DNA of 64,000 nt from Schmidtea polychroa (lineage: Eukaryota), in the NCBI GenBank assembly GCA_044892525.1, contig CM097888.1, forward strand, positions 32,798,001 through 32,862,000, given 5' to 3'. The notes below the pieces were generated by a model, which made no database searches, was not told where the DNA came from, and was given only the letters and a program-made list of their open reading frames with translations. Shown piece after piece: positions 6,841-48,744 of the stretch; the stretch's first letter is position 1; each line of letters begins with the position of its first letter. A program made the translations under genes and the position numbers.

Positions 6841-7320
6841 CAAGTGATACTCATGACATTTATTGTTTGAAAAATTATTTCACAAAAAAATGATAACCCC
6901 ATTAAATTATTCAAAACAACATTAATTACTAATCAATAAGTAGATGAAGAAAAAAAGTTGGCAAAAATTTGAAAATTGGTTATTATAAATTATAAATTGT
7001 ATAACAATTAGAAAAACTTCCTCTGTTGAAAATGGATGTATTATTTAATTTGACAAGATACAGCATGAAAATATTTTTAATAATTTTATTTGCAATTTAA
7101 AATGTCTTCAAAATGAATTTTATTATTTGAACTCTTTTTTTACTTTTCATTGTGTTTGATGTTTTAATTGTGGTTTTATGAAAGTTTGATATATATATTT
7201 TTGATATATAATTTTTTTGTGAAATTCACTTGAAAAAGACAGTGCCGAAAATTTGTGAGTATCAAAAAACATCGATATATTACTGATTTATAGTCTCCAA
7301 GCTCTCTTTTTAATAAATAA

Positions 7321-9266: not shown

Positions 9267-10781
9267 TTAAAGAACTGAAAATTTCCTTATGTGTTGGGTA
9301 GTTTTTTCGTGCGTTAATATTTCATTATCTTTGTAATCACTTGGAACCAAAGAAGAAGTTCTTTCTATCATTCGGTGATTACTTAGAATGTGCGTATCAG
9401 GCGTTTGGAGAGATTCTATCTCTCTATGATAAAAATAATTGAAGTTCGAAACAATAACAGGTACTGGAAGGGCAATAGTTAAAACACCAGCAATTGCACA
9501 TAAGCTTCCGACCATTTTGCCCCAAACTGTAACCGGGCGCATATCACCATAACCGACAGTCGTCATTGTTACAACAGCCCACCAAAAAGCATCAGGAATA
9601 CTTCGAAAATAGGAATTCGTTGAATCTGCTTCAGCAAAATACATTGCACTAGAAAATAGAATGACACTGATTAACAAGAAAAACATTAGCAATCCCAATT
9701 CGCGCACACTGGCTTTCAAAGTCTGTCCGAGAATTTGCAAACCCTTGAAATGCCGTGATAATTTAAATATTCGAAATACGCGCACCAATCGAATGACTCG
9801 AAGAATAGCCAATGACGTTGATTGGTTCTGTGTGGAATAAGAACTTGAAAGAAATGTAGCTAAAGAAAGAAAATATGGAAGAATCGACAAAAAGTCAATG
9901 ATGTTCATTATGTTTTTCATATACTCCAACTTTTTCGGACAAGTGACTATTCTCACAAACATTTCAAATGTAAACCAAGAAACACACAAGGTTTCGATGA
10001 TAAAAAACGGCTGGTTTACTTCCGGCAAATTATCTTCATGAATTATCCAAGCGGATCTCGAGGAGTTATTAGTGAAAGATTTTAAATTACTTTCCAATTT
10101 ATAAGTCTTAAAATGAGGTAGAGTTTCAGCACAAAAAATCAAAATAGAAATAATAATAACCAAAACGGAAATTAGAGCTATCAATCTAGCACATGTAGAG
10201 CTTTCTGGATATTCGAAAAGCAACCATAATTTTCTTTTCCATCTATTAACCGGTAAAGCTTTCACTTGGTCTTGCATCATGCCTTCATCGATTCGATATT
10301 TTTCCACAGCATCAGAATCGATTTGATAGAAAACAATTTCCTCAGAAAACGTATCGAAAGGAACATTAACCGGCCGTCTCAATTTTCCACCGCTTTGATA
10401 ATAATAAAGAATGCCATCAAAACTCGGTCGATTTCTGTCGAAAAAGAATTCATTTCTCAATGAATCGAAGTATTGGTTTCGTCGAACTGGATTTCCTAAC
10501 AGGGTTGCCGGAAACTTATTTAAAGTTTGAAGTTGCGTTTCGAATTTCAAACCGCTTACATTAATCACTACTCGATCTGCGTTGTAGTTTCCATTTGTTA
10601 AAATATTTGAAAGCTCATAAACCGGTTTGTAAAACCTGTTGCCATCAGCGGTTGAATGATTAAAACACCATGGAAACTGTTTGTAAATCGGTACATTTGA
10701 ATACAAGAAATGATAACTAGATGGCTGTGTACAAGTATTCACAGTTCCCCCACGATCAATCCCAGCCATAGCTACTTCCAT
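9267..10781 (-). CDS. Shaker (KCNA/Kv1): Shaker/Kv1-family voltage-gated potassium channel, intronless, 504 aa
   Basis: T1 domain ([24 protein letters not shown]), S1-S6, S4 [18 protein letters not shown], filter TTVGYGD, PVP hinge. First ATG at 10781 (MEVAMAG); the ORF track start at 10793 is a TTG. Confidence 0.97.
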
Positions 10782-20689: not shown

Positions 20690-21180
20690 AAAATCGGACG
20701 AATAAGCAATTTAAGTAAAATTAGTACAAACTTTAATCGAAAGACTTTTGATATTTAATGCGAATAGGTCGGCATTATTGATAAGAACTTTTAATCCTAA
20801 AATCAATGTGCAGAATGCAGTGAATACGTGTGTGTTGAATGTTTTTAATTAAATTTTTGTATGTTGATGTATATTGAATAATAGTTATGCTAAATAATTA
20901 AAAAAATAGTTAAAATAATATTTTTTAAATAATTTTAAAAGTTTAAATATAATTGATTATTGAAAATTATTTTTAAAAAAAATAATTGTTTAAAATTTTT
21001 ATTTATAATTTAAAATTTATAGATTTTATAATTTGTTTATATATTATAAATATAGTATAGTTATTCATCCGTCGTGAATGTAGGTAATCTGATGATGATA
21101 GTGATGTTATCGAAATATATAGTGAAAAAGATGTATGAATGGCGATTTTTATTAATAGTACATACTGTTTAGTTTTTTTT
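20690..21180 (+). mobile_element. Penelope-like element 3'/pLTR remnant
   Basis: Shares AATCC(T/G)AAAAT(C/T)AATGTGCAGAATGCAGTGAATAC and the downstream hammerhead region with 32200-32600. Boundaries approximate. Confidence 0.7.
21086..21124 (+). ncRNA. Degenerate minimal type I hammerhead ribozyme (PLE-type)
   Basis: CTGATGA (21089), stem II GATAG/TTATC, GAAA, palindromic TATAT, AUA site. Stem I is eroded. Confidence 0.55.
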
Positions 21181-36600: not shown

Positions 36601-39439
36601 CAGGCATGAGCAACTTGTTTTTGTTAGGGGCCAGTTCAGTCTTTGAAAATGTTTCGGGGGCCGGATGTATTTAGCACGAATTTATTAATATATATTCCAA
36701 TAATATATCTTTTTAATAGCAAAGATCATTTAAATTTACAATATTAAGCATATATTATATATTATAGATTATATATTATATACTATATACTAGTTGTTAT
36801 TGGAAGGCAAAATATACAAACTATGAAAATACCCAAATTTAACTTTAATAATCCCATATTTATAGTTTATTTACTCGCACAAACTCTGGATTGTTCGAAT
36901 TTATATTTTTTATGCTTCTCAAATTTGCATATACTACTCAAATATACCCAACATATCAATATCAATCTTGTTCTGGTTTTGGTCTGTGTGACATTTGACA
37001 CTTTTTATCACGACATAAATCTGAAATATTTGCCTTGATAGTTGATGTTGCTACTCGTAATTCGTTTGACAAGTTATCATCAGTGAGCCGACATCTTTTT
37101 TTGCACTTTGTTTGTTTCATCTTAGAAAAGAATTGTTCACAGATGTAAGTGCTGGGGAAAAGTGAGACCATTTTCAGCGCATGATATCGGATTGATGGAA
37201 ACGCTTTCTGAGAAATGTAGAGTTTGTAGAATTGAATCAAAGAGACGTCACGAAACTTTCTTTCCAGATCGCCATTACACTGCAATTCAATGAGCTCCAT
37301 TTGCATTGATTCTGGTGCTATCTCAACATTAACACTGAATGGTTCAGAAAATAGTTTGAAATCATTTTCATGTTCGGCAAAATCAGCAAATCTTGAAGAA
37401 AACTGTGTTTTCAATGCAATTATGTGTTCATTAAATTTCTTCGTGTTAGCTAAATTTGCAACATTTTTGCAATCAGTTAGATTTGGAAAATGCACCGTAA
37501 TGTCCTTTGATAATTGATTCTCCCATAGTTTTAGCTTTGTCTGAAATCCTTTGATATGATCATAAAGATTATTTATCAGTTGATCCCGGCCTTGTAACTT
37601 CGTGTTTAGATCATTCAGATGCGTTGTGATGTCAACCAAAAAGGCCAAGTCAAGTAGCCAATTTGCATCGGATAACTCCGGAATTGGTTTCGACTTCATC
37701 TCCATAAAAAGTTTAATTTCTTCACGAAGTCAATAAAAGCGATGCAATACTTTTCCTCTGCTCAGCCAGCGAACTTCGCTAAAGTAAATTACATCCGAGT
37801 ATTCTGTCTCAATGCTAGTGAGAAACTCTTTGAATTGTCGATGATTCAATCCACGTGATCTTATGAAATTCACGGTTTTCACAACAACTGTCATCACATG
37901 GTCCATCTTTAGTTCTTTTACACATAAATTCTCTTGGTGGATTATGCAATGTGATGCAATTAATTGCTCACTTCCTTTCATTTTAACTAGCTCCGCCTTC
38001 AATAAACCAACTACTCCATTTTTTATTCCAACCATTGCCGGAGCTCCGTCTGTCGTTATTCCTGTTAGTTTTGGAAGAAAAAGCCCGTTTTCTGCCAATG
38101 CAGTTTTGATTTCATCAAAAACATCTTCTCCAGTTGTAGTCCCTTTCATGCTCGCTAATTTCAACAGTTCTTCCGTAACGTGGAAGTCCTGATCAACCCC
38201 ACGCACAAAAATTGCTAACTGCGCGGTGTCTGTCATATCCGTGCTTTCATCAAGGCATATTGAATATGCTTGAAATAGTTCAGCTTTTTCTTTCAAGATT
38301 GTTTCAATGTTTTTTGCAATATCATCAATTCGTCTTACGATTGTAAATCGAGAAAGGTTGATATTCGAGAAAAGTTGATTTTTTTCGGGACAGATACAAT
38401 CCACAGCCGCATCAATGCATTCTTTGACAAACTCCCCATCAGAAAACGGTTTCAGTTTCTTGGCAATTATCTCACTTATCATGAAACTCGCCTTCACAAC
38501 ACACTCAACCTCTTTATTAACTTTGATAAAGAATGTCTGTTGCCCTAGAAGTGCTTTTCGGAGAGATTCGATCCTATCTTTCCTTAATTGTCCCTGTATC
38601 TGATCGAACTTTTCTGCATGCTGAGTCTGGTAATGCCGTCTTACATTAAATTCCTTTTTAACGGAAATTGATTGCGAGCAAACAAGACAAACGAGCATAT
38701 TGTTTGATTCTACAAACAGATAATCCGATGTCCACTTATGATTAAATACTCGGTGTTCACTGTCAACTTTTCGTTTTTTTGTAATAGTGCTCATCCTCAA
38801 CTGTGGTTCATCAGAATTATTGGAAATATCAGTGGAATGTTGCCCATGCCTGATTTATATGGACACAATGAAAAATAAATAAATATTCAACTTACATTTT
38901 TATTTAAAAATTGTAAATTTCAAATGAAAATAATTTGATAAAATAAACAAATCTTTTAAAAGTAATTATTAAAACGAGAAGGAATAATATTAAATTAGAT
39001 AAACCAAAAACAAATACTGAAATCCTTAATTAGCTTATTTCATCTATTACTACATTTATAAACCTATATCATTTTTGATAAATGATGAGAATTACAAACT
39101 TTATCGATAGAAAATTTCTTTTACGATTTATAGTTTAAGATTTATAAATATTTTGCAATAAAATTCGGTCTTCGCTTATGAGATTTTATATTACTGAATC
39201 TTGTTCATAGACAAAAGATGTTTTCATGTTTATGCTACTATAATGAAAATGTCATAATTAAAAAGTTTACTGCTGCACCACCACGCTTATATTAAATGCG
39301 TATTTGTACTAATGGTGTAGCTCTAACGTCAACTGCATACATTCCTGAAAGCTTATCAAGGGCCTGGTTATATGGTGTGGATCAATGAACACTGGGGCCG
39401 GTCAAAAGAGGCTCGCGGGCCGTATGTTGCTCATGCCTG
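36601..39439 (-). mobile_element. Buster-family hAT transposon (SPIN/GTF2IRD2-like), full length
   Basis: Perfect 14-bp TIRs CAGGCATGAGCAAC (36601-36614, 39426-39439). Left flank GTCTAACT has the Buster-type central TA. The right TSD is lost in the gap. Confidence 0.95.
36962..38794 (-). pseudogene. SPIN-like hAT transposase (~610 aa) with a single in-frame TGA at 37730-37732
   Basis: KKRKVD..CLVC..RRHYQTQH zinc finger, LDESTD, TDGAPAM, HCIIHQE, EVRWLS, TYICEQFFS. The two ORF-track pieces are in the same frame. Confidence 0.92.
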
Positions 39440-39757
39440 NNNNNNNNNNNNNNNNNNNNNNNNNNNNNNNNNNNNNNNNNNNNNNNNNNNNNNNNNNNNN
39501 NNNNNNNNNNNNNNNNNNNNNNNNNNNNNNNNNNNNNNNNNNNNNNNNNNNNNNNNNNNNNNNNNNNNNNNNNNNNNNNNNNNNNNNNNNNNNNNNNNNN
39601 NNNNNNNNNNNNNNNNNNNNNNNNNNNNNNNNNNNNNNNNNNNNNNNNNNNNNNNNNNNNNNNNNNNNNNNNNNNNNNNNNNNNNNNNNNNNNNNNNATG
39701 TCTAACAATAAAATAAGATAAACATTACAAGCTTTGTGATACCCAGTGCAAGTCCCA

Positions 39758-39799
39758 ATAGTAGCCTAGTTTCGAGCTTTTGGCTCTCATCAGTACTAT
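39758..39799 (-). ncRNA. Minimal type I hammerhead ribozyme, copy 1 (cleavage triplet mutated to GGC)
   Basis: Minus strand: ATAGTA-CTGATGA-GAGC(CAAAA)GCTC-GAAA-CTAG-GC-TACTAT. Confidence 0.8.
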
Positions 39800-40128
39800 G
39801 CAGGAGACGCGAAGATTTCTATTCGCGCCAGGTAAGTATACAATATTGCTGATTCAACTCTATTGCATACTTTGCCTGTTACACTAGACATCACATCACT
39901 TGCAAATTCGCTACATCACAGAATAAAAATATCTGCAAACTTGTAAACATGGCGTATGAAAAATCATACTCGCCCCTTGAGACACCGTCATACACAGAAA
40001 CTGTTTACAAGTGCATCCGTAAACCTTTAGCATTTTTAACTTGTAATGGATTAAAATACTTTTTACGAATGTCTAACAATAAAATAAGATAAACATTACA
40101 AGCTTTGTGATACCCAGTGCAAATCCCA

Positions 40129-40170
40129 ATAGTAGACTAGTTTCGAACTTTTGGCTCTCATCAGTACTAT
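40129..40170 (-). ncRNA. Minimal type I hammerhead ribozyme, copy 2 (intact)
   Basis: Minus strand: ATAGTA-CTGATGA-GAGC(CAAAA)GTTC-GAAA-CTAG-TC/TACTAT. 6-bp stem I, 4-bp stem II, palindromic stem III (ACTAGT), canonical GUC site. Confidence 0.9.
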
Positions 40171-41947
40171 ACAGGAGACGCGAAGATTTCTCTTCGCGCC
40201 AGGTAAGTATACAATATTGCCGATGCAACTTTCGCAACTAGTTCGAAACTAGTCGACTATTGGGATTTGCACTGGGTATCACAAAGCTTGTAATGTTTAT
40301 CTTATATATATATATATATATATATATGAAAGCAATATAAGAGAATGAAATAATTCTAATAACGAAAATATTTTTTCTATTTTGTGAACATGATAAATTT
40401 CATAAATCCAATAAAATTCTTTTTTGAATGATGGATTTTTATTTGTTTTAAAACAAGCATACATTGAAAATAAATTGTGAATATTTATATTTTTGTATCG
40501 AATTTCAAATACCTTTACTCATAACCAACAAATGCTATGGAAATAATATCAACAATATTTCTATGACACTTGAGAATGCATAACCTTTTGAATTATTGGA
40601 ATTTTAACACAACTCAAGTTTCATTTAGTGAAATTTATTTGCACAATATATTCTTGACGTCAATATTTTTTATAAAATCTTATTTTTTTAATTTTAAGAG
40701 TAATATTTAACTCTTAGTTGGCCAAGAAAAAATAAAATGAATTTAATGACCGAATGTACTTTCCAGTATAATCATATTTGGTATCTTCAGTGTTTTGACA
40801 AATATCATTGTTTTGTGATCATCAAGGTTAGAGGTACGTGCAAATTTTGTTAAATTGTCATAATGTGGGTTGATATAATATATTTCGTATGAAGTACCTA
40901 GAAGTACCGACGGTCAACTAAGGGTTAGAATGGAAAATAAATTTGATTTTTGTCGTATTATGTTGTGATCCCTGTGTTGTGGGTGAACTATTAAAAGGAA
41001 ACTAATAATTGAAACTAATAATTAAAAGTTGAAAATGTATTACCTTGAAAATAACAAAGTATGGTGATAAAATTGCAAGAAAACAGTATAGTCTCCTGCT
41101 GAAACAATTGATAATCAGAAAATCAGTTATATCATATATTTGCATGTTATATATGGCTCCTAATTAAATGCAAACTAAATAATCCCATTTTGCACACTAA
41201 AAAATTAACATTTGCTAACTATTTTTTGAAAACTAAAAAAATGATTTTTGCACACTATTAAATACTTATTTGCTAACTATATTTTGCAAATTAAAAAAAT
41301 GATTTTTGCACACTATAAAATCGATATTTGCTAACTATGTTCTGCAAACTAAAAAATAAATATTTGCACATTATTTTCAAAAATATTTGTACATTATAAA
41401 ATAAAAATTTCAGATATATTTCAATGAATAAAAAAGCATAGAGATTACAATTTATTGTGAATGCTTAAATACAACAATTTATAGACATTTAAAAAATGGT
41501 TTAACAAAATGTTTTGTATGATGGCTGCATTTTATTTGCACTAGATATAATAAATTTTTAGTTCTACTGCAACAGCAATGCTTTTCTCGCTTTTGCAGGG
41601 CGACCTCTCCTTCTTTTGGTTCCAATTGGAACATTTTTCGCTTCGGTTGGAGGGGCTACAAGCTTTAGTCGAATAGCTAATCCAACAATGTGTTTGCAAA
41701 ACATTTTTTTAAAAAAAGAAGGGCAGTTACAGTCTCCGTTAATCCAGTCATTTTGATCTTTTGGTAAAATAGTAGTCCATGAAAGAAATGCATTAATTTT
41801 AAACTCATCAAACGTTTCCCAGTTGTCAATTCCATCGTAGGTTTCTGTCAAATCTTTTGCAGCAATTTTGTAAACAACACCACTCTCTGTTGACTCTGGA
41901 GAAATGGTTTTCTTCAACTTTGTCCACTGGTATGAGCTAGTCCAAAG

Positions 41948-44383
41948 TAGGGTTTCTGGATACTGTTTAACAGTAACAGTAAAACAGTTGTTTTTTCGTA
42001 AAAAAATCAAAAACAGCAAACAGCTGTTTTTTCATAACTGTTTTTAACTGTTTTTCAGTAAAACTTAAAGTTCACTGTTAAAAAAATGACGGGTTTTCCA
42101 GTCATTAAGAACCAGAAAACACGTCATTCAGCGTTCTTTTCTCAATTTTTTCTGAATTGACCTGTCTCGCGTCATTTAATCGTCTTAACCCGTCATTTAC
42201 GCATCATATGCTAGGCAAATCAATGGACAGCCTTTGCTCAACATGCCACACAACGCGACCGCTTTCCATTCAAGGTCAACAGTCAATGCATTGTTTAGAC
42301 GTCTAGACATAGCACCACTTATATATAAATGAACAGCACTGGTTTGTGTTTATTTTCACATTATAAAATAAGCATTGCAACTTTTACTGAAATAAATATT
42401 TTTACCGATTTAATTATTTTCAGTAATAAATCAACGATTTTAATTTGTTTTAATTGTTTTAAATGATTAATTTTCTATTAGTAATGGCTTCTGTTTGGGA
42501 ATTTGCCACAAAACGACGGAATCCGCACACAAAAGAGCTTGAAGGTCAATGCAATCGATGCAATAGCATAATTAAGTGCTCTGGATATTCAACGACAACT
42601 TTAAAGAGACATCTACAGCAGCATGGCATCAAGTTTGATCAGGCTGGGGAACCAAGCACATCCAAGAATGGAATTCAGACCGAAAAGAGACAAAAAACTG
42701 TTGCTGACTTTTTTGAACGAGAATCTCTCAAAGAAATTGTGTCAGACATGGCAACGGATGGAGTAACTATTCGAGCAATAACAAGAAATAAGTTCATTAG
42801 AAAATCCTTAACACGCGATGGTCACAAATTGCCTGCGAATGAAACTGATGTCATGAAACTATTGCACGATGATTTTGAAGAAAAACAGAAGAAAATGGTT
42901 GATGAGATTCAAGCGAAGGTTGCGAAAGGTATCAAGTTCAGCATGACCGTCGATGAGGCTACAACTTTACGTGGTCGTCGATATTTCGGAATTAATATTC
43001 ATGACTATGAGAGAGATTCCAATAAAACTTATAAGACAGGCCTCGTGCGGATTCTCGGTTCTTGCAACACTCTTAGCATGATTGAAATTCTTCGAGATCA
43101 TCTCAAATCGTTTGGCATTTCAATGGAAAAAGATTTGGTTGGATCCACACAGGATGGAGCTGCAGTTAATCAAAGATTTATCAGCCTCATTGATGTTATC
43201 GGTCAGTTCTGTCTCAATCACGGTTTACACCTTGGAGTATATGACACTTTGTACAAAAAGAAATCAGAAATTGAAGAACCCATCATCATTGATGAAGATT
43301 CAAATGAGGAAGATAATTTTGATGAACCAACCGATTTTGAATTAATCAATGAAAACCATAATGAGATCGATTATCATGAAATACTCAAAAAGTCTCGCAA
43401 GATTGTCAAATTCTTCAAACATTCACCTGTTCGAAATCATGTGCTTCAATCAAATATCAAACAAATTCACTCTCGAGAAATTGAACTGCATCTGGATGTG
43501 AAAACACGCTGGAATTCAATCCCAACCATGCTTGAACCGTTAATTAAAACCGAAGCATCAATTCATGAGACTCTTCAGGATTTCAAAGCACTCGATCTGC
43601 TAGCAGCAATGGAGCCAGTTAAGCTAGCAGTAGAGAATCTTAGCAGAGAGGACTCAACTTTAATGAGCGCGGATACAATTTTAAATTTTATGTTCACAAA
43701 ACTATCGAACATTAAAAATGAAATTGCAGAGAAATTACTGGAAAATCTAAAGCAGCGAGTTGGTGAAAGACTCAATCCCGACCTAATGAATCTCTTACGC
43801 AGCCTGAAAGATCCATCGATTGTGCCTTCGAGAAACACGATTAATTTTGCAGGAAGTCTTGCAAAACGACTATTTGAAGTTGCTGACGAAGATACTGGCG
43901 ATCAATTACCTCACGAAGAAATATCTGTAAATTTATCAATGCAGGAGGAACTAAATGCTTTGCTTCAAAAAAGTGAAACTACAGTCACGCCAGCTAATGA
44001 TGCTGTCAAGTGGCTAAAGTCGGAATTTACACTTTTCAAGAACACTGGACAGCGAACTGAAAACCTACAAAAACTCTTTAATGCCATTTTGACCATCAAA
44101 CCCACTTCCACGGACGTAGAACGCGTTTTTTCGGTCACCTCAAGTTTTTGCACCTAAATTCGATCTCGTCTATCAGATAAATCACTGCAAGCATTGGTCT
44201 TTTTGAAATATTATTATAATAAATCAAATAAATAATTAAAAGGCTTTAATTTCATATTAAAAAGTTTTTTTCCTTACATTATTTACAGTAAAAACATTTA
44301 AAAACAGTAAAACAGCTGTTTTTTAAAGAATCAGAAACAGTTAAACAGCTGTTTTTTGAAACCACTGTTTTTCAGAGTCCCTA
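41948..44383 (+). mobile_element. Ac-type hAT transposon nested in the MULE
   Basis: TAGGG...CCCTA imperfect TIRs, 8-bp TSD GTCCAAAG (41940-41947, 44384-44391), many subterminal AAACAG/CTGTTT repeats. Confidence 0.93.
42484..44235 (+). pseudogene. hAT transposase (BED finger, DDE, dimerisation domain) with a premature TAA at 44155-44157
   Basis: CNRC..TLKRHLQQH, TVDEAT, QDGAAVN, CLNHGLHL, TRWNS, TSTDVERVFS. The frame continues IRSRLSDKSLQALVFLK to TAA 44233-44235. Confidence 0.9.
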
Positions 44384-46581
44384 GTCCAAAGTTCCAAGTC
44401 AATTTCTGGTTCGGTTTTGATGACTTTAATTCCAGATTCGTAATTGTTGGACCACCTTTCAATCCAATCAACCAATCCAACAGTAAATCTTGATAGTGAG
44501 ACTCGCTCTCTCATAGAATCTTCATCTTTCATGACTCGGTTGTATGCCTCAAGGGCATTGTTTGTGCTAGGTGTTAGTTTTTTGGCACCTTCAAACCAAT
44601 TTTTATTTGATTTCAGCCATTCAGCTGTGAAGTATTCGACAAACTCCTTGTTTGCCTTCCACTTTTTCAAGAATAAAATTGATACTTTTTCAAAAACTTC
44701 TCTGGATTGACTGAGTTGCAAAGAATCAATGTCAGACAAAATTTCCTGTCTTGCATCTTTTGGAATCAAAGAATCCACTTTTTTCTGAACATTTTTTTTC
44801 ATATGAGCCCAGCACATAATCACCAATACGTCTTTGCCAAACACTGCTATGAAAGAGTTTTGGATGCTTTTTGATGCATCAGAAATAAATGTGCTTGGAT
44901 TGAAGGGAGCATTGAAGATTTTAGGAACTTCATTCTTCAATGCAGTAAACAAAAATTTGAAGTCCTCAGTTTTTTCATCGGTGCATACTCCAATACCAAA
45001 ACAATGAAACTGGCGATTGCGATCTGTTGTACCAATAACAAGAACAGGGAAGCCTTGCCATACAAGTTTGTATGTAGCATCTGCATGAATGTTGTCAGCG
45101 TTTAAAGCCATTTTCAACATTGTTTTGGATGAAATGAAGTACCGGAAATATCCAGTGTCCTCATATTTAATTTCATATGCAACAACAAATGCTTTGTTAT
45201 CTGCTTCTGGAGCAGCTGAATGAATTTGCAACCACTGATTTAATTTTCCAAGGCTAATGATGTTGGCACCATATTTGGACTTTCTCAAGGATGCCAGATG
45301 ATTATTCAGTTGTGTTCTAACATTGCTTTTGGTTTCAATTTTAAAGCAAACAATTTGTCAATTTCAGCTTTGACGGTATCTGTCATTGTTGTTCTTGTTT
45401 TGATGTTGTCACAATCATGTGCATGTCCTGATCTGTATAGAACAACATCACTAGTGCTGGACTCGTACCACAAGTAAACTGAGGGTGAACATTGTTCCCC
45501 ACGAAATTTAACACGATTACAGCGGAAAAACCTCTTTTTCCCCTCTTCAGTTTTATTTGTCCGAAAACAAGACCACACTTTTTCGTTTTTTACAAAATCC
45601 TCAGCTTCATTTGAACTTGCAAATGCATTTGCTCTTTTCCAGTCTTTGCAAATTTTTTTCCTTCGAGTTTCAAGTTTTAAAACGTGTTCTTCATCTTCAT
45701 TTCCTGAAGAACAGTATTCTGGAACAAAGTCAAACTCTGAATTTTTTTTAAATTCCACCATTGCTATAACGACAAAGAAGTATTTATTATGAATAAAACA
45801 AACATAGTTAGAAAATAATTTATTTAGCTTTTATTTATTATAGTTTGCATTATTTATAGTTATTATTTATAGTTAGCATTTATTATTTATAGTTAGCATT
45901 TATAGTGTGCAAATACATTAAAATAGTGTGCATTTAAATTGTAGCGGTTATATATTAGCACCAGGTTTCTTACAACATCCTAATTGAGGACGACACAATT
46001 TTCAACTTATCAATTTTCTTCACTAGTTTAAGATCTAAAGAGTGGAAAAGCTGCTAAATATGCTTAGGGACTTAAGATATCAATTATGTTATGTTGAATA
46101 TTTTTTTGAGATTCCAAACAAGTATTAAAAGTCGATTTAATCAAAGGCAATATAAACTCGTATTACTACATTGATGTTATCAATGAAATCATGAGTATTA
46201 TGACATAAGCCAGGAACCCAAAATTTTATTTGCTCTATATGAATAGTCCTTTCTACATATTCCACTGAACAAAAATAGTTGTAAAAAATGTTATTAAGCT
46301 TGTAGCAAAAAGAAAATGCGTCCAGCATCATACAAAGATGCTTCTAGGGTATTAAATATACAATTTATAAACCTAATCTTTTATTAGCATGTAATTATTA
46401 TAATAATAATGCCAATGTTAATTATTAATAATTCTAGGAATGATAACAATAATTTTAAGGAGTTGTTCATCTTTTTTGTTGTTGTAAAATAATTAATTAG
46501 CATAAATTACTAATTTTATAGCCGATTATTTTGTATTTATATATAAATTATAAAAGTATTTAATAAGAAACTATTTTTTAG

Positions 46582-48607: not shown

Positions 48608-48744
48608 TATTTATTAAAAGCTTCACTATGAATCAGTAAATATATCGATTGATCCAAATTCACTTGAAAAAGAGTACCGAAAATTCGTGAATATCAAAAA
48701 CATCGATATATTTACTGATTCATAGTCAAGCTTTTTAATAAATA
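48608..48744. mobile_element. Fold-back MITE with TA ends; related partial copy at ~7228-7320
   Basis: AAAAGCTTCACTATGAATCAGTAAATATATCGAT and its inverse (1 mismatch in 34 bp) flank a short spacer. Spacer and right arm recur at 7228-7320. Confidence 0.75.

Follow-up and report, generated by a model that had tools for sequence, protein, structure and literature searches.

A U1 snRNA-like segment in the hammerhead module of a high-copy retrozyme-type repeat of Schmidtea polychroa

Why does a sequence that reads like the 5' end of U1 small nuclear RNA (snRNA) stand directly in front of a hammerhead ribozyme? This question is raised by a 64,000-nucleotide (nt) stretch of the genome of Schmidtea polychroa (assembly GCA_044892525.1, contig CM097888.1, positions 32,798,001 to 32,862,000; hereafter the window), in which two neighboring repeat copies on the minus strand carry such a U1-like stretch. 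An earlier note on this DNA had proposed that the repeat either captured a U1 promoter and start site or presents a single-stranded sequence that binds splice sites. As described below, the U1-like stretch belongs to the conserved ribozyme module of a non-coding, retrozyme-type repeat that is present in many copies. For the whole we favor an explanation whose chances we rate as roughly even: the module is mobilized by Penelope-like elements (PLEs) and holds a captured fragment of U1 (nt 1 to 16–19), which would play a structural role.

Unit numbering starts at the first A of the U1-like stretch. The full 371-nt unit (copy 2) occupies 39840–40210 on the minus strand and is followed, with a period of 371 nt, by a partial downstream unit (copy 1, 39698–39839, minus) that ends at a run of N (39440–39697). 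The two direct repeats are 96% identical, and in both the order given by the earlier note can be read directly, namely the U1-like stretch, a hairpin with a GAAA tetraloop, and the hammerhead 14 nt later. The U1-like 16-mer ATACTTACCTGGCGCG lies at 40195–40210 in copy 2 (read from 40210 to 40195) and at 39824–39839 in copy 1 (39839 to 39824), both on the minus strand. The hairpin of copy 2, CGCGAAGA-GAAA-TCTTCGCG (40179–40198, minus, read from 40198 to 40179), is perfect over 8 bp, as had been described, and its loop is likewise readable solely on the strand of the ribozyme. Its 5' arm CGCGAAGA overlaps nt 13–16 of the U1-like stretch, or nt 13–19 when the U1 genes of a tandem array (see below) are taken for comparison. 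The hairpin of copy 1 (39808–39827, minus), identified by direct reading and folding, has one mismatch (G19>T). Upstream of copy 2, the last 10 nt of a preceding unit, GCAATATTGT (40211–40220, minus), form the 5' end of the direct part of the insertion. A truncated piece of the unit (positions 62–127, 98% complementary) lies in inverted orientation at 40240–40305 on the plus strand and is succeeded by (TA)12 at 40303–40327. Such a head-to-head arrangement is typical of PLE-type insertions.

The ribozyme of copy 2 (40119–40178, minus) is a type-I hammerhead, as judged from its alignment to the Rfam model HH9 (RF02275; 22.8 bits, E 0.0085) and from the letters of its core. It is composed of the 5' strand of helix I, CUGAUGA, helix II, GAAA, the palindrome ACUAGU, and the 3' strand of helix I. 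CTGATGA is found at 40164 to 40158, helix II is formed by GAGC/GTTC and followed by GAAA, and the cleavage triplet GTC ends at 40135, after whose C the cut is predicted. Helices I (about 10–12 bp with a bulge) and II (GAGC/GYUC) are paired in the HH9 alignment as well as in the minimum free energy folds, helix I being the open-ended one. The hammerhead of copy 1 (39748–39807, minus; 19.3 bits) has an intact core, but it is probably inactive because its triplet is GGC instead of GUC (U16.1>G; 39766 to 39764). Both HH9 scores lie under the gathering score of 52, which is expected because helix III has shrunk to the six-letter palindrome. Hammerheads with such a minimal helix III work as dimers (PMC4209133).

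The U1-like stretch is a constant component of a repeat family and not a local coincidence. At least 2,109 candidate matches to the unit were found in the 781-Mb genome. The exact 16-mer has 1,081 copies (543 forward, 538 reverse) and the exact 25-nt ribozyme core 1,055, while the reversed controls gave none. In 30 of the 30 best loci, the layout consists of a variably 5'-truncated unit, a full unit, and unit positions 1 to about 90–177; one of these loci ends with a full unit, and some also carry an upstream inverted truncated piece like that at window 40240–40305. The 5' ends of the insertions are scattered, with about 40% of them falling within a long hairpin (unit positions 335–362) that makes up 13% of the unit, and their 3' ends cluster at unit positions 122–137 and 159–177 (loci L001–L060). 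Very often, (TTA)n or (TA)n microsatellites directly follow the 3' ends. This partial-tandem, truncated layout is a signature of PLEs and of non-autonomous retrozymes without long terminal repeats (non-LTR retrozymes; PMC7229834; PMC11167929; preprint 10.64898/2026.07.22.740005).

Other properties agree with this assignment. The 371-nt units form non-coding partial tandems with a type-I hammerhead in each, they are dispersed in many copies, and the unit contains no open reading frame (ORF). PLEs co-occur in the genome, with more than 2,500 candidates for their GIY-YIG endonuclease, some of which lie within open frames of about 800 amino acids, and a motif together with its spacing is common to the unit and a PLE repeat family. 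The PLEs of the same genome thus probably mobilize the 371-nt unit. The architecture, which the earlier note could not match to any described element, is instead that of a retrozyme-type hammerhead repeat related to PLEs, based on layout, copy number, and PLE-repeat homology. A variant that might have represented an ancestral subfamily without the U1 module (L056/L057) turned out to be three copies of one local duplication, and the other copies without the module are deletions or 5' truncations and not an older subfamily. No autonomous PLE was found between paired modules 3–8 kb apart, the pairs being independent insertions.

How far does the stretch resemble U1? The U1 5' end AUACUUACCUG is present in the element, and the likeness extends further than had been noted. 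Several types of U1 gene exist in this genome. Those of type a (U1a) start with ATACTTACCTGGCGCGGTTT and match the element at 16 of 16 positions (nt 1–16), and those of a 1,771-bp tandem array on chromosome 4 start with ATACTTACCTGGCGTGAAGT, which agrees with the family majority ATACTTACCTGGCGCGAAG at 18 of 19 positions. If nt 1–11 are taken as a mere complement of the 5'-splice-site consensus, the probability that the 8 nt past them match nt 12–19 of any of six U1 types this well was estimated at p = 0.004. Because the match thus exceeds what a complement to the 5'-splice-site consensus would give, the stretch most likely derives from the host's own U1 snRNA, of which it spans nt 1 to 16–19. 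The fragment is short, and the unit is neither a U1 gene nor a pseudogene. Local alignment found nothing beyond nt 1 to 16–19 that is shared with U1 genes or their flanks, no match to the Rfam U1 model (RF00003) was obtained at E up to 10 in window 39300–40800, and neither an Sm-like site nor a U1A loop is present in the unit. As an aside, high-scoring U1 genes with altered 5' ends also exist in this genome (three U1b genes, two U1c genes, and locus L083). In these, AAACTTACTTGG and AAACTAACCTGG replace ATACTTACCTGG, so that the splice-site-recognition sequence differs at two positions.

The sequence upstream of the fragment has a different relative. A separate hammerhead family is located 3' of a PLE endonuclease ORF (locus L092); it counts at least 220 copies and carries a conserved CAATATTGTATAGTTATTCATCC 41 nt before CUGAUGA. 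The retrozyme counterpart, CAATATTGTATACTTACCTGGCG, starts 43 nt before its own CUGAUGA, and the upstream CAATATTGTATA is common to the retrozyme and the PLE repeat at a like distance from the ribozyme. Since the sequence directly upstream of the U1-like A is PLE-derived and not U1 flank, capture of a U1 promoter by descent, as the earlier note had considered, is rejected. The likeness to U1 genes stops at nt 1, and alignment of the upstream region with 8 flanks of host U1 genes, a check that the note itself had suggested, revealed no similarity, only AT-rich noise at most. The junction can be accounted for by a template switch, in which a reverse transcriptase would have reached the 5' end of a U1 template and returned to the element by way of AUAGUUA, the near-identical sequence that related PLE repeats have at this position. 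Re-annealing at this microhomology would give exactly the junction seen. Template switching has also been proposed as the origin of the U1 and U2 heads of SINEU elements (PMC4494074). The core of the second hammerhead family, which forms a PLE terminal repeat, reads CTGATGATGATAGTGATG.TATCGAAA, and fragments of that family are present elsewhere in the window at 21024–21157 (plus strand), 7222–7318, and 48650–48743.

The predicted fold indicates what the fragment may do in the element RNA. The sense strand of the module (39740–39885, minus) folds at −50.5 kcal/mol (z = −4.16; 0 of 200 shuffled sequences fold as well), compared with z = −1.34 for the antisense strand, and the same fold is predicted in other natural copies. 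It contains a four-way junction that joins a closing stem, a hairpin of ~21 bp, the GAAA hairpin, and hammerhead helix I with helix II. In the ~21-bp hairpin, nt 1–11 of the U1-like stretch would pair with CAGG(G/T/C)AAAGUAU 22 nt upstream, and nt 13–20 would serve as the 5' strand of the GAAA hairpin, which is present in every fold. In the window, fold prediction places the upstream arm at 39867–39878 (minus), where it reads CAGGCAAAGTAT and looks like a 5' splice site; the family majority is CAGG(G/T)AAAGTAT, with the polymorphic site at window 39874. Under this model, the splice-site look of the arm is simply that of a complement to the U1-like strand. The 11-mer is predicted to be paired in multimeric or unit-length RNA, which speaks against the single-stranded splice-site-binding sequence of the earlier note, and the fragment would not be a free U1 mimic in the element RNA.

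By analogy with described metazoan retrozymes, multimeric transcripts would undergo cleavage after GUC. As helix III is only the palindrome ACUAGU, two hammerheads would have to associate for this. Cleavage would release unit-length RNA, which would then be circularized and reverse-transcribed. In such an RNA, the U1-like fragment would be the strand common to two helices of the four-way junction that includes helix I. We therefore infer from the folding model that the U1 fragment has a structural place in the ribozyme module and acts neither in promotion or initiation of transcription nor as a splicing RNA.

The module is also retained in a second species. For this comparison, assembled contigs from two organisms, A and B, were used, and within the run index the module occurs in these two organisms only. 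Contigs of organism B match only window 40083–40221 at any depth, an interval running from the U1-like stretch through the hairpin and the hammerhead to the 3' side of helix I; beyond it, a few low-depth contigs reach 39840–39909. Nt 3–16 of the U1-like stretch are kept, with no listed difference in 40190–40208, and many contigs break from the reference at 40208, just upstream of the kept nt. Differences are found in the 3' arm of the hairpin and in loop II. As this hairpin variant is absent from the S. polychroa genome, B represents a different genome. Judged from these contigs, the module is conserved as a block with the U1-like stretch at its 5' edge. A metagenome scan for the combination of a U1-like stretch and a hammerhead gave one chance match, which lies inside a bacterial coding region.

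Several observations weigh against the structural explanation or its individual parts. In organism B, the module shows 5–6 differences in about 128 positions, so that 14 unchanged nt are not beyond expectation. The 16-mer is intact in 21% of the sampled copies, compared with a median of 44% for 16-nt windows. The PLE family used for comparison is only distantly related to the retrozyme and is not its parent, and the template switch is deduced from its outcome and not observable. The pairing of nt 1–11 with the upstream arm is a prediction, and one pair of the long stem is often mismatched owing to the partner position 337, where about 60% of the copies have G, about 37% have T, and this window has C. 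Regarding the rapid decay, the CpG-rich GGCGCG is the fastest-decaying window of the module, mostly by CpG transitions (28 sampled monomers). That the 16-mer decays faster than most windows implies that the inserted copies are not under selection, as is expected for dead copies.

Different readings of the same letters have to be compared with this explanation. It is improbable, in our view, that the stretch is not derived from U1 at all and is instead a hairpin arm that resembles the complement of a 5' splice site by chance or selection, the additional GGCGCG being coincidental. Such a history would require fewer changes, since ATAGTTA, which matches U1 nt 1–7 at 6 of 7 positions, already occupies this place in the related PLE repeat. 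However, it would leave unexplained the full agreement with U1a and the near-complete agreement with the array U1, where the extension alone has a p of about 0.004, and no likeness to U1 would be expected of a hairpin whose role is purely structural. Unlikely as well is an snRNA-type promoter within the unit, from which transcription would begin at the first A, so that the first hammerhead would release a capped RNA of ~76 nt with a free U1-like 5' end. An ATGCAAAW box at about −69 to −61 is common to the genome's U1a2/a3, U1c, U2, and U4 genes (U5 genes have ATGTAA at about −77 to −70, a few nt further upstream), and the octamer-like ATTTGCAA, which the earlier note had pointed out upstream of copy 1, is indeed found there (39900–39907, minus, read from 39907 to 39900). 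Counted from the first A of copy 1, it occupies −68 to −61, the position of the snRNA box, and the probability of finding such a box, in one orientation or the other, no more than 4 nt from there is p = 0.014. It runs, however, opposite to the box of all real snRNA genes examined, and the unit contains no ATGCAAAW box in the forward direction, so that of the claimed promoter likeness the position stands and the orientation does not. Moreover, several real U1 genes lack the box, the upstream region is PLE-like without similarity to U1 flanks, and the 5' ends of insertions are not piled up at the first A. A start site is in keeping with newt satellite 2, a hammerhead repeat that is driven by an snRNA-type promoter (Coats et al. 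1994, as cited in PMC2220036), and with the predicted fold of the 76-nt fragment, in which nt 1–11 are largely unpaired because the upstream partner arm is not in that RNA. The further step, that a self-processed, capped ~76-nt U1 mimic starting at the U1-like A would act on 5' splice sites or compete for U1 factors, appears highly doubtful to us. Both the free-mimic and the start-site readings are less likely than the structural one.

Two readings concern splicing itself. Following the layout of Penelope, the unit could hold a cis-acting splicing element with a donor at CAG/GUAAAGUAU and an intron ending in CAUAG before the ribozyme core, in which case the intronic U1-like stretch, as a mimic of U1, would shield the donor. 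The Penelope element of Drosophila virilis has a 75-nt intron 46 nt downstream of its transcription start, and the 3' end of this intron directly adjoins helix I of the hammerhead (PMC2377424; PMC4209133); this parallel, together with donor-like and acceptor-like sites 80 nt apart, speaks for the idea. Yet the donor GU is present in only about 37% of the copies, most of which have GG. A clean exon–exon junction was found in no genomic copy, which is weak evidence and not decisive because PLEs retain introns in their genomic copies. In the four copies with short deletions, the bases of the donor site are retained (GT three times, GG once), three of these copies being joined at an AGTA microhomology, and no GT..AG joint is present among the contig joints listed. 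Taken together, we consider a cis-acting splicing element unlikely. An antisense intron (GTAAGT ... CACTAG) was rejected because its acceptor is private to the copy in this window, with CACTGG as the family majority. Slightly less likely than the cis-acting element is a role in trans, in which opened sense RNA would compete with U1, or the antisense CGCGCCAG/GTAAGTAT would form a strong site for the U1 small nuclear ribonucleoprotein (snRNP) and affect the processing of host transcripts that read through an insertion. Over 16 nt, the antisense strand is a perfect complement of U1, and thousands of copies are dispersed on both strands. Against this, folding significantly better than that of shuffled sequences was obtained for the sense strand only, the predicted fold hides the 11-mer of the sense RNA in a helix, and nt 12–16 of U1 are normally inside a U1 helix, so that binding would not select for their complement. 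The structural reading accordingly remains the one that we prefer.

A few observations touch on these subjects without bearing on the choice between them. The PLE repeat (L092 and its relatives L091, L094, L095, and L098) has a conserved GTGAGTAT about 118 nt before the hammerhead core and TGTAG just before helix I, which together would fit a Penelope-style intron that abuts the ribozyme; ATAGTTAT of the same repeat could pair imperfectly with the donor-like GTGAGTAT. Some U1 genes, including those of the chromosome-4 array, have TTGAAA(A)T further upstream instead of ATGCAAAW, and ATGCAAAW, ATGTAA, and TTGAAA(A)T are candidate proximal promoter elements for this lineage (snRNA loci L031–L040, L061–L081, and L082).

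Within the window, the surroundings of the retrozyme copy (36962–38800, minus, and 41564–45761) are rich in ORFs derived from DNA transposons, including a MULE transposase domain at 44341–45288 and a Spin-doc zinc finger with DUF4371 at 37730–38800, and a 564-amino-acid ORF at 42463–44157 has no Pfam match. A 58-nt tandem repeat (3.2 copies, with subunits like TTTGCA(A/C)ACTA) is located at 41188–41374, 1 kb from the retrozyme copy. Unrelated to the repeat is a full-length match to Rfam K_chan_RES at 9444–9557 (minus; 87.1 bits, with a gathering score of 51), which suggests an editing-site hairpin in an exon of a Shaker-type channel in an AT-rich invertebrate genome.

Retrozymes and the hammerheads of PLEs are known. 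A U1 splice-site-recognition end that is built into a retrozyme module and kept in a second species is new in the literature searched, in which no paper linking PLE or hammerhead elements with U1 snRNA was found. If the proposed origin is right, the family offers a dated, high-copy case of a small-RNA fragment captured by a PLE-type reverse transcriptase, with the microhomology of the junction still visible. It also provides a construct for asking whether helices beyond the hammerhead core modulate self-cleavage of the dimer. Should transcription start at the first A and leave the U1-like end free, a retroelement would be producing a mimic of U1 that might influence splicing. Independently of this, the ATGCAAAW box at about −65 of snRNA genes may help the annotation of small-RNA genes in this lineage.

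Among the known systems, the metazoan non-LTR retrozymes are the closest match (PMC7229834). Like these, the repeat consists of small, non-coding tandem units (about 150–400 nt in the described cases) with a type-I hammerhead in each, has many dispersed copies and an RNA predicted to be highly self-paired, and possesses a short palindromic helix III that implies dimeric cleavage; retrozyme-like repeats have been mentioned in platyhelminths (Cervera and de la Pena 2020, PMC7229834). The U1-derived segment sets it apart from the described metazoan retrozymes. With PLE terminal repeats (Cervera and de la Pena 2014, PMC4209133; preprint 10.64898/2026.07.22.740005), it shares a minimal hammerhead in a PLE-flanking or PLE-derived repeat, partial tandem and inverted truncated copies, and a 3' "tail" by AT-rich targets. 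The local PLE repeat family has the same CAATATTGTATA.TTA at the same distance from the ribozyme, but it carries ATAGTTATTCATCC at the site of the U1 sequence of the retrozyme and differs in helix II and in the hairpin before helix I, and the retrozyme unit, unlike the PLE, lacks an ORF. Newt satellite 2 (Coats et al. 1994, as cited in PMC2220036) is likewise a hammerhead repeat with snRNA-gene-like features inside its unit; a functional snRNA-type promoter has been demonstrated there, whereas the repeat described here has only an inverted octamer-like box at the matching distance and a copy of U1 nt 1–16. Finally, SINEU (Kojima 2015, PMC4494074) is also a non-autonomous retroelement with acquired snRNA sequence, probably gained by template switching. 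In SINEU, long snRNA segments form the 5' end of poly(A)-tailed, LINE-dependent SINEs (short interspersed elements that depend on long ones) in crocodilians. In the retrozyme-type repeat of S. polychroa, by contrast, the U1 segment spans 16–19 nt, does not coincide with the 5' ends of insertions, and lies internal to the tandem unit of a PLE-type element, beside the ribozyme.

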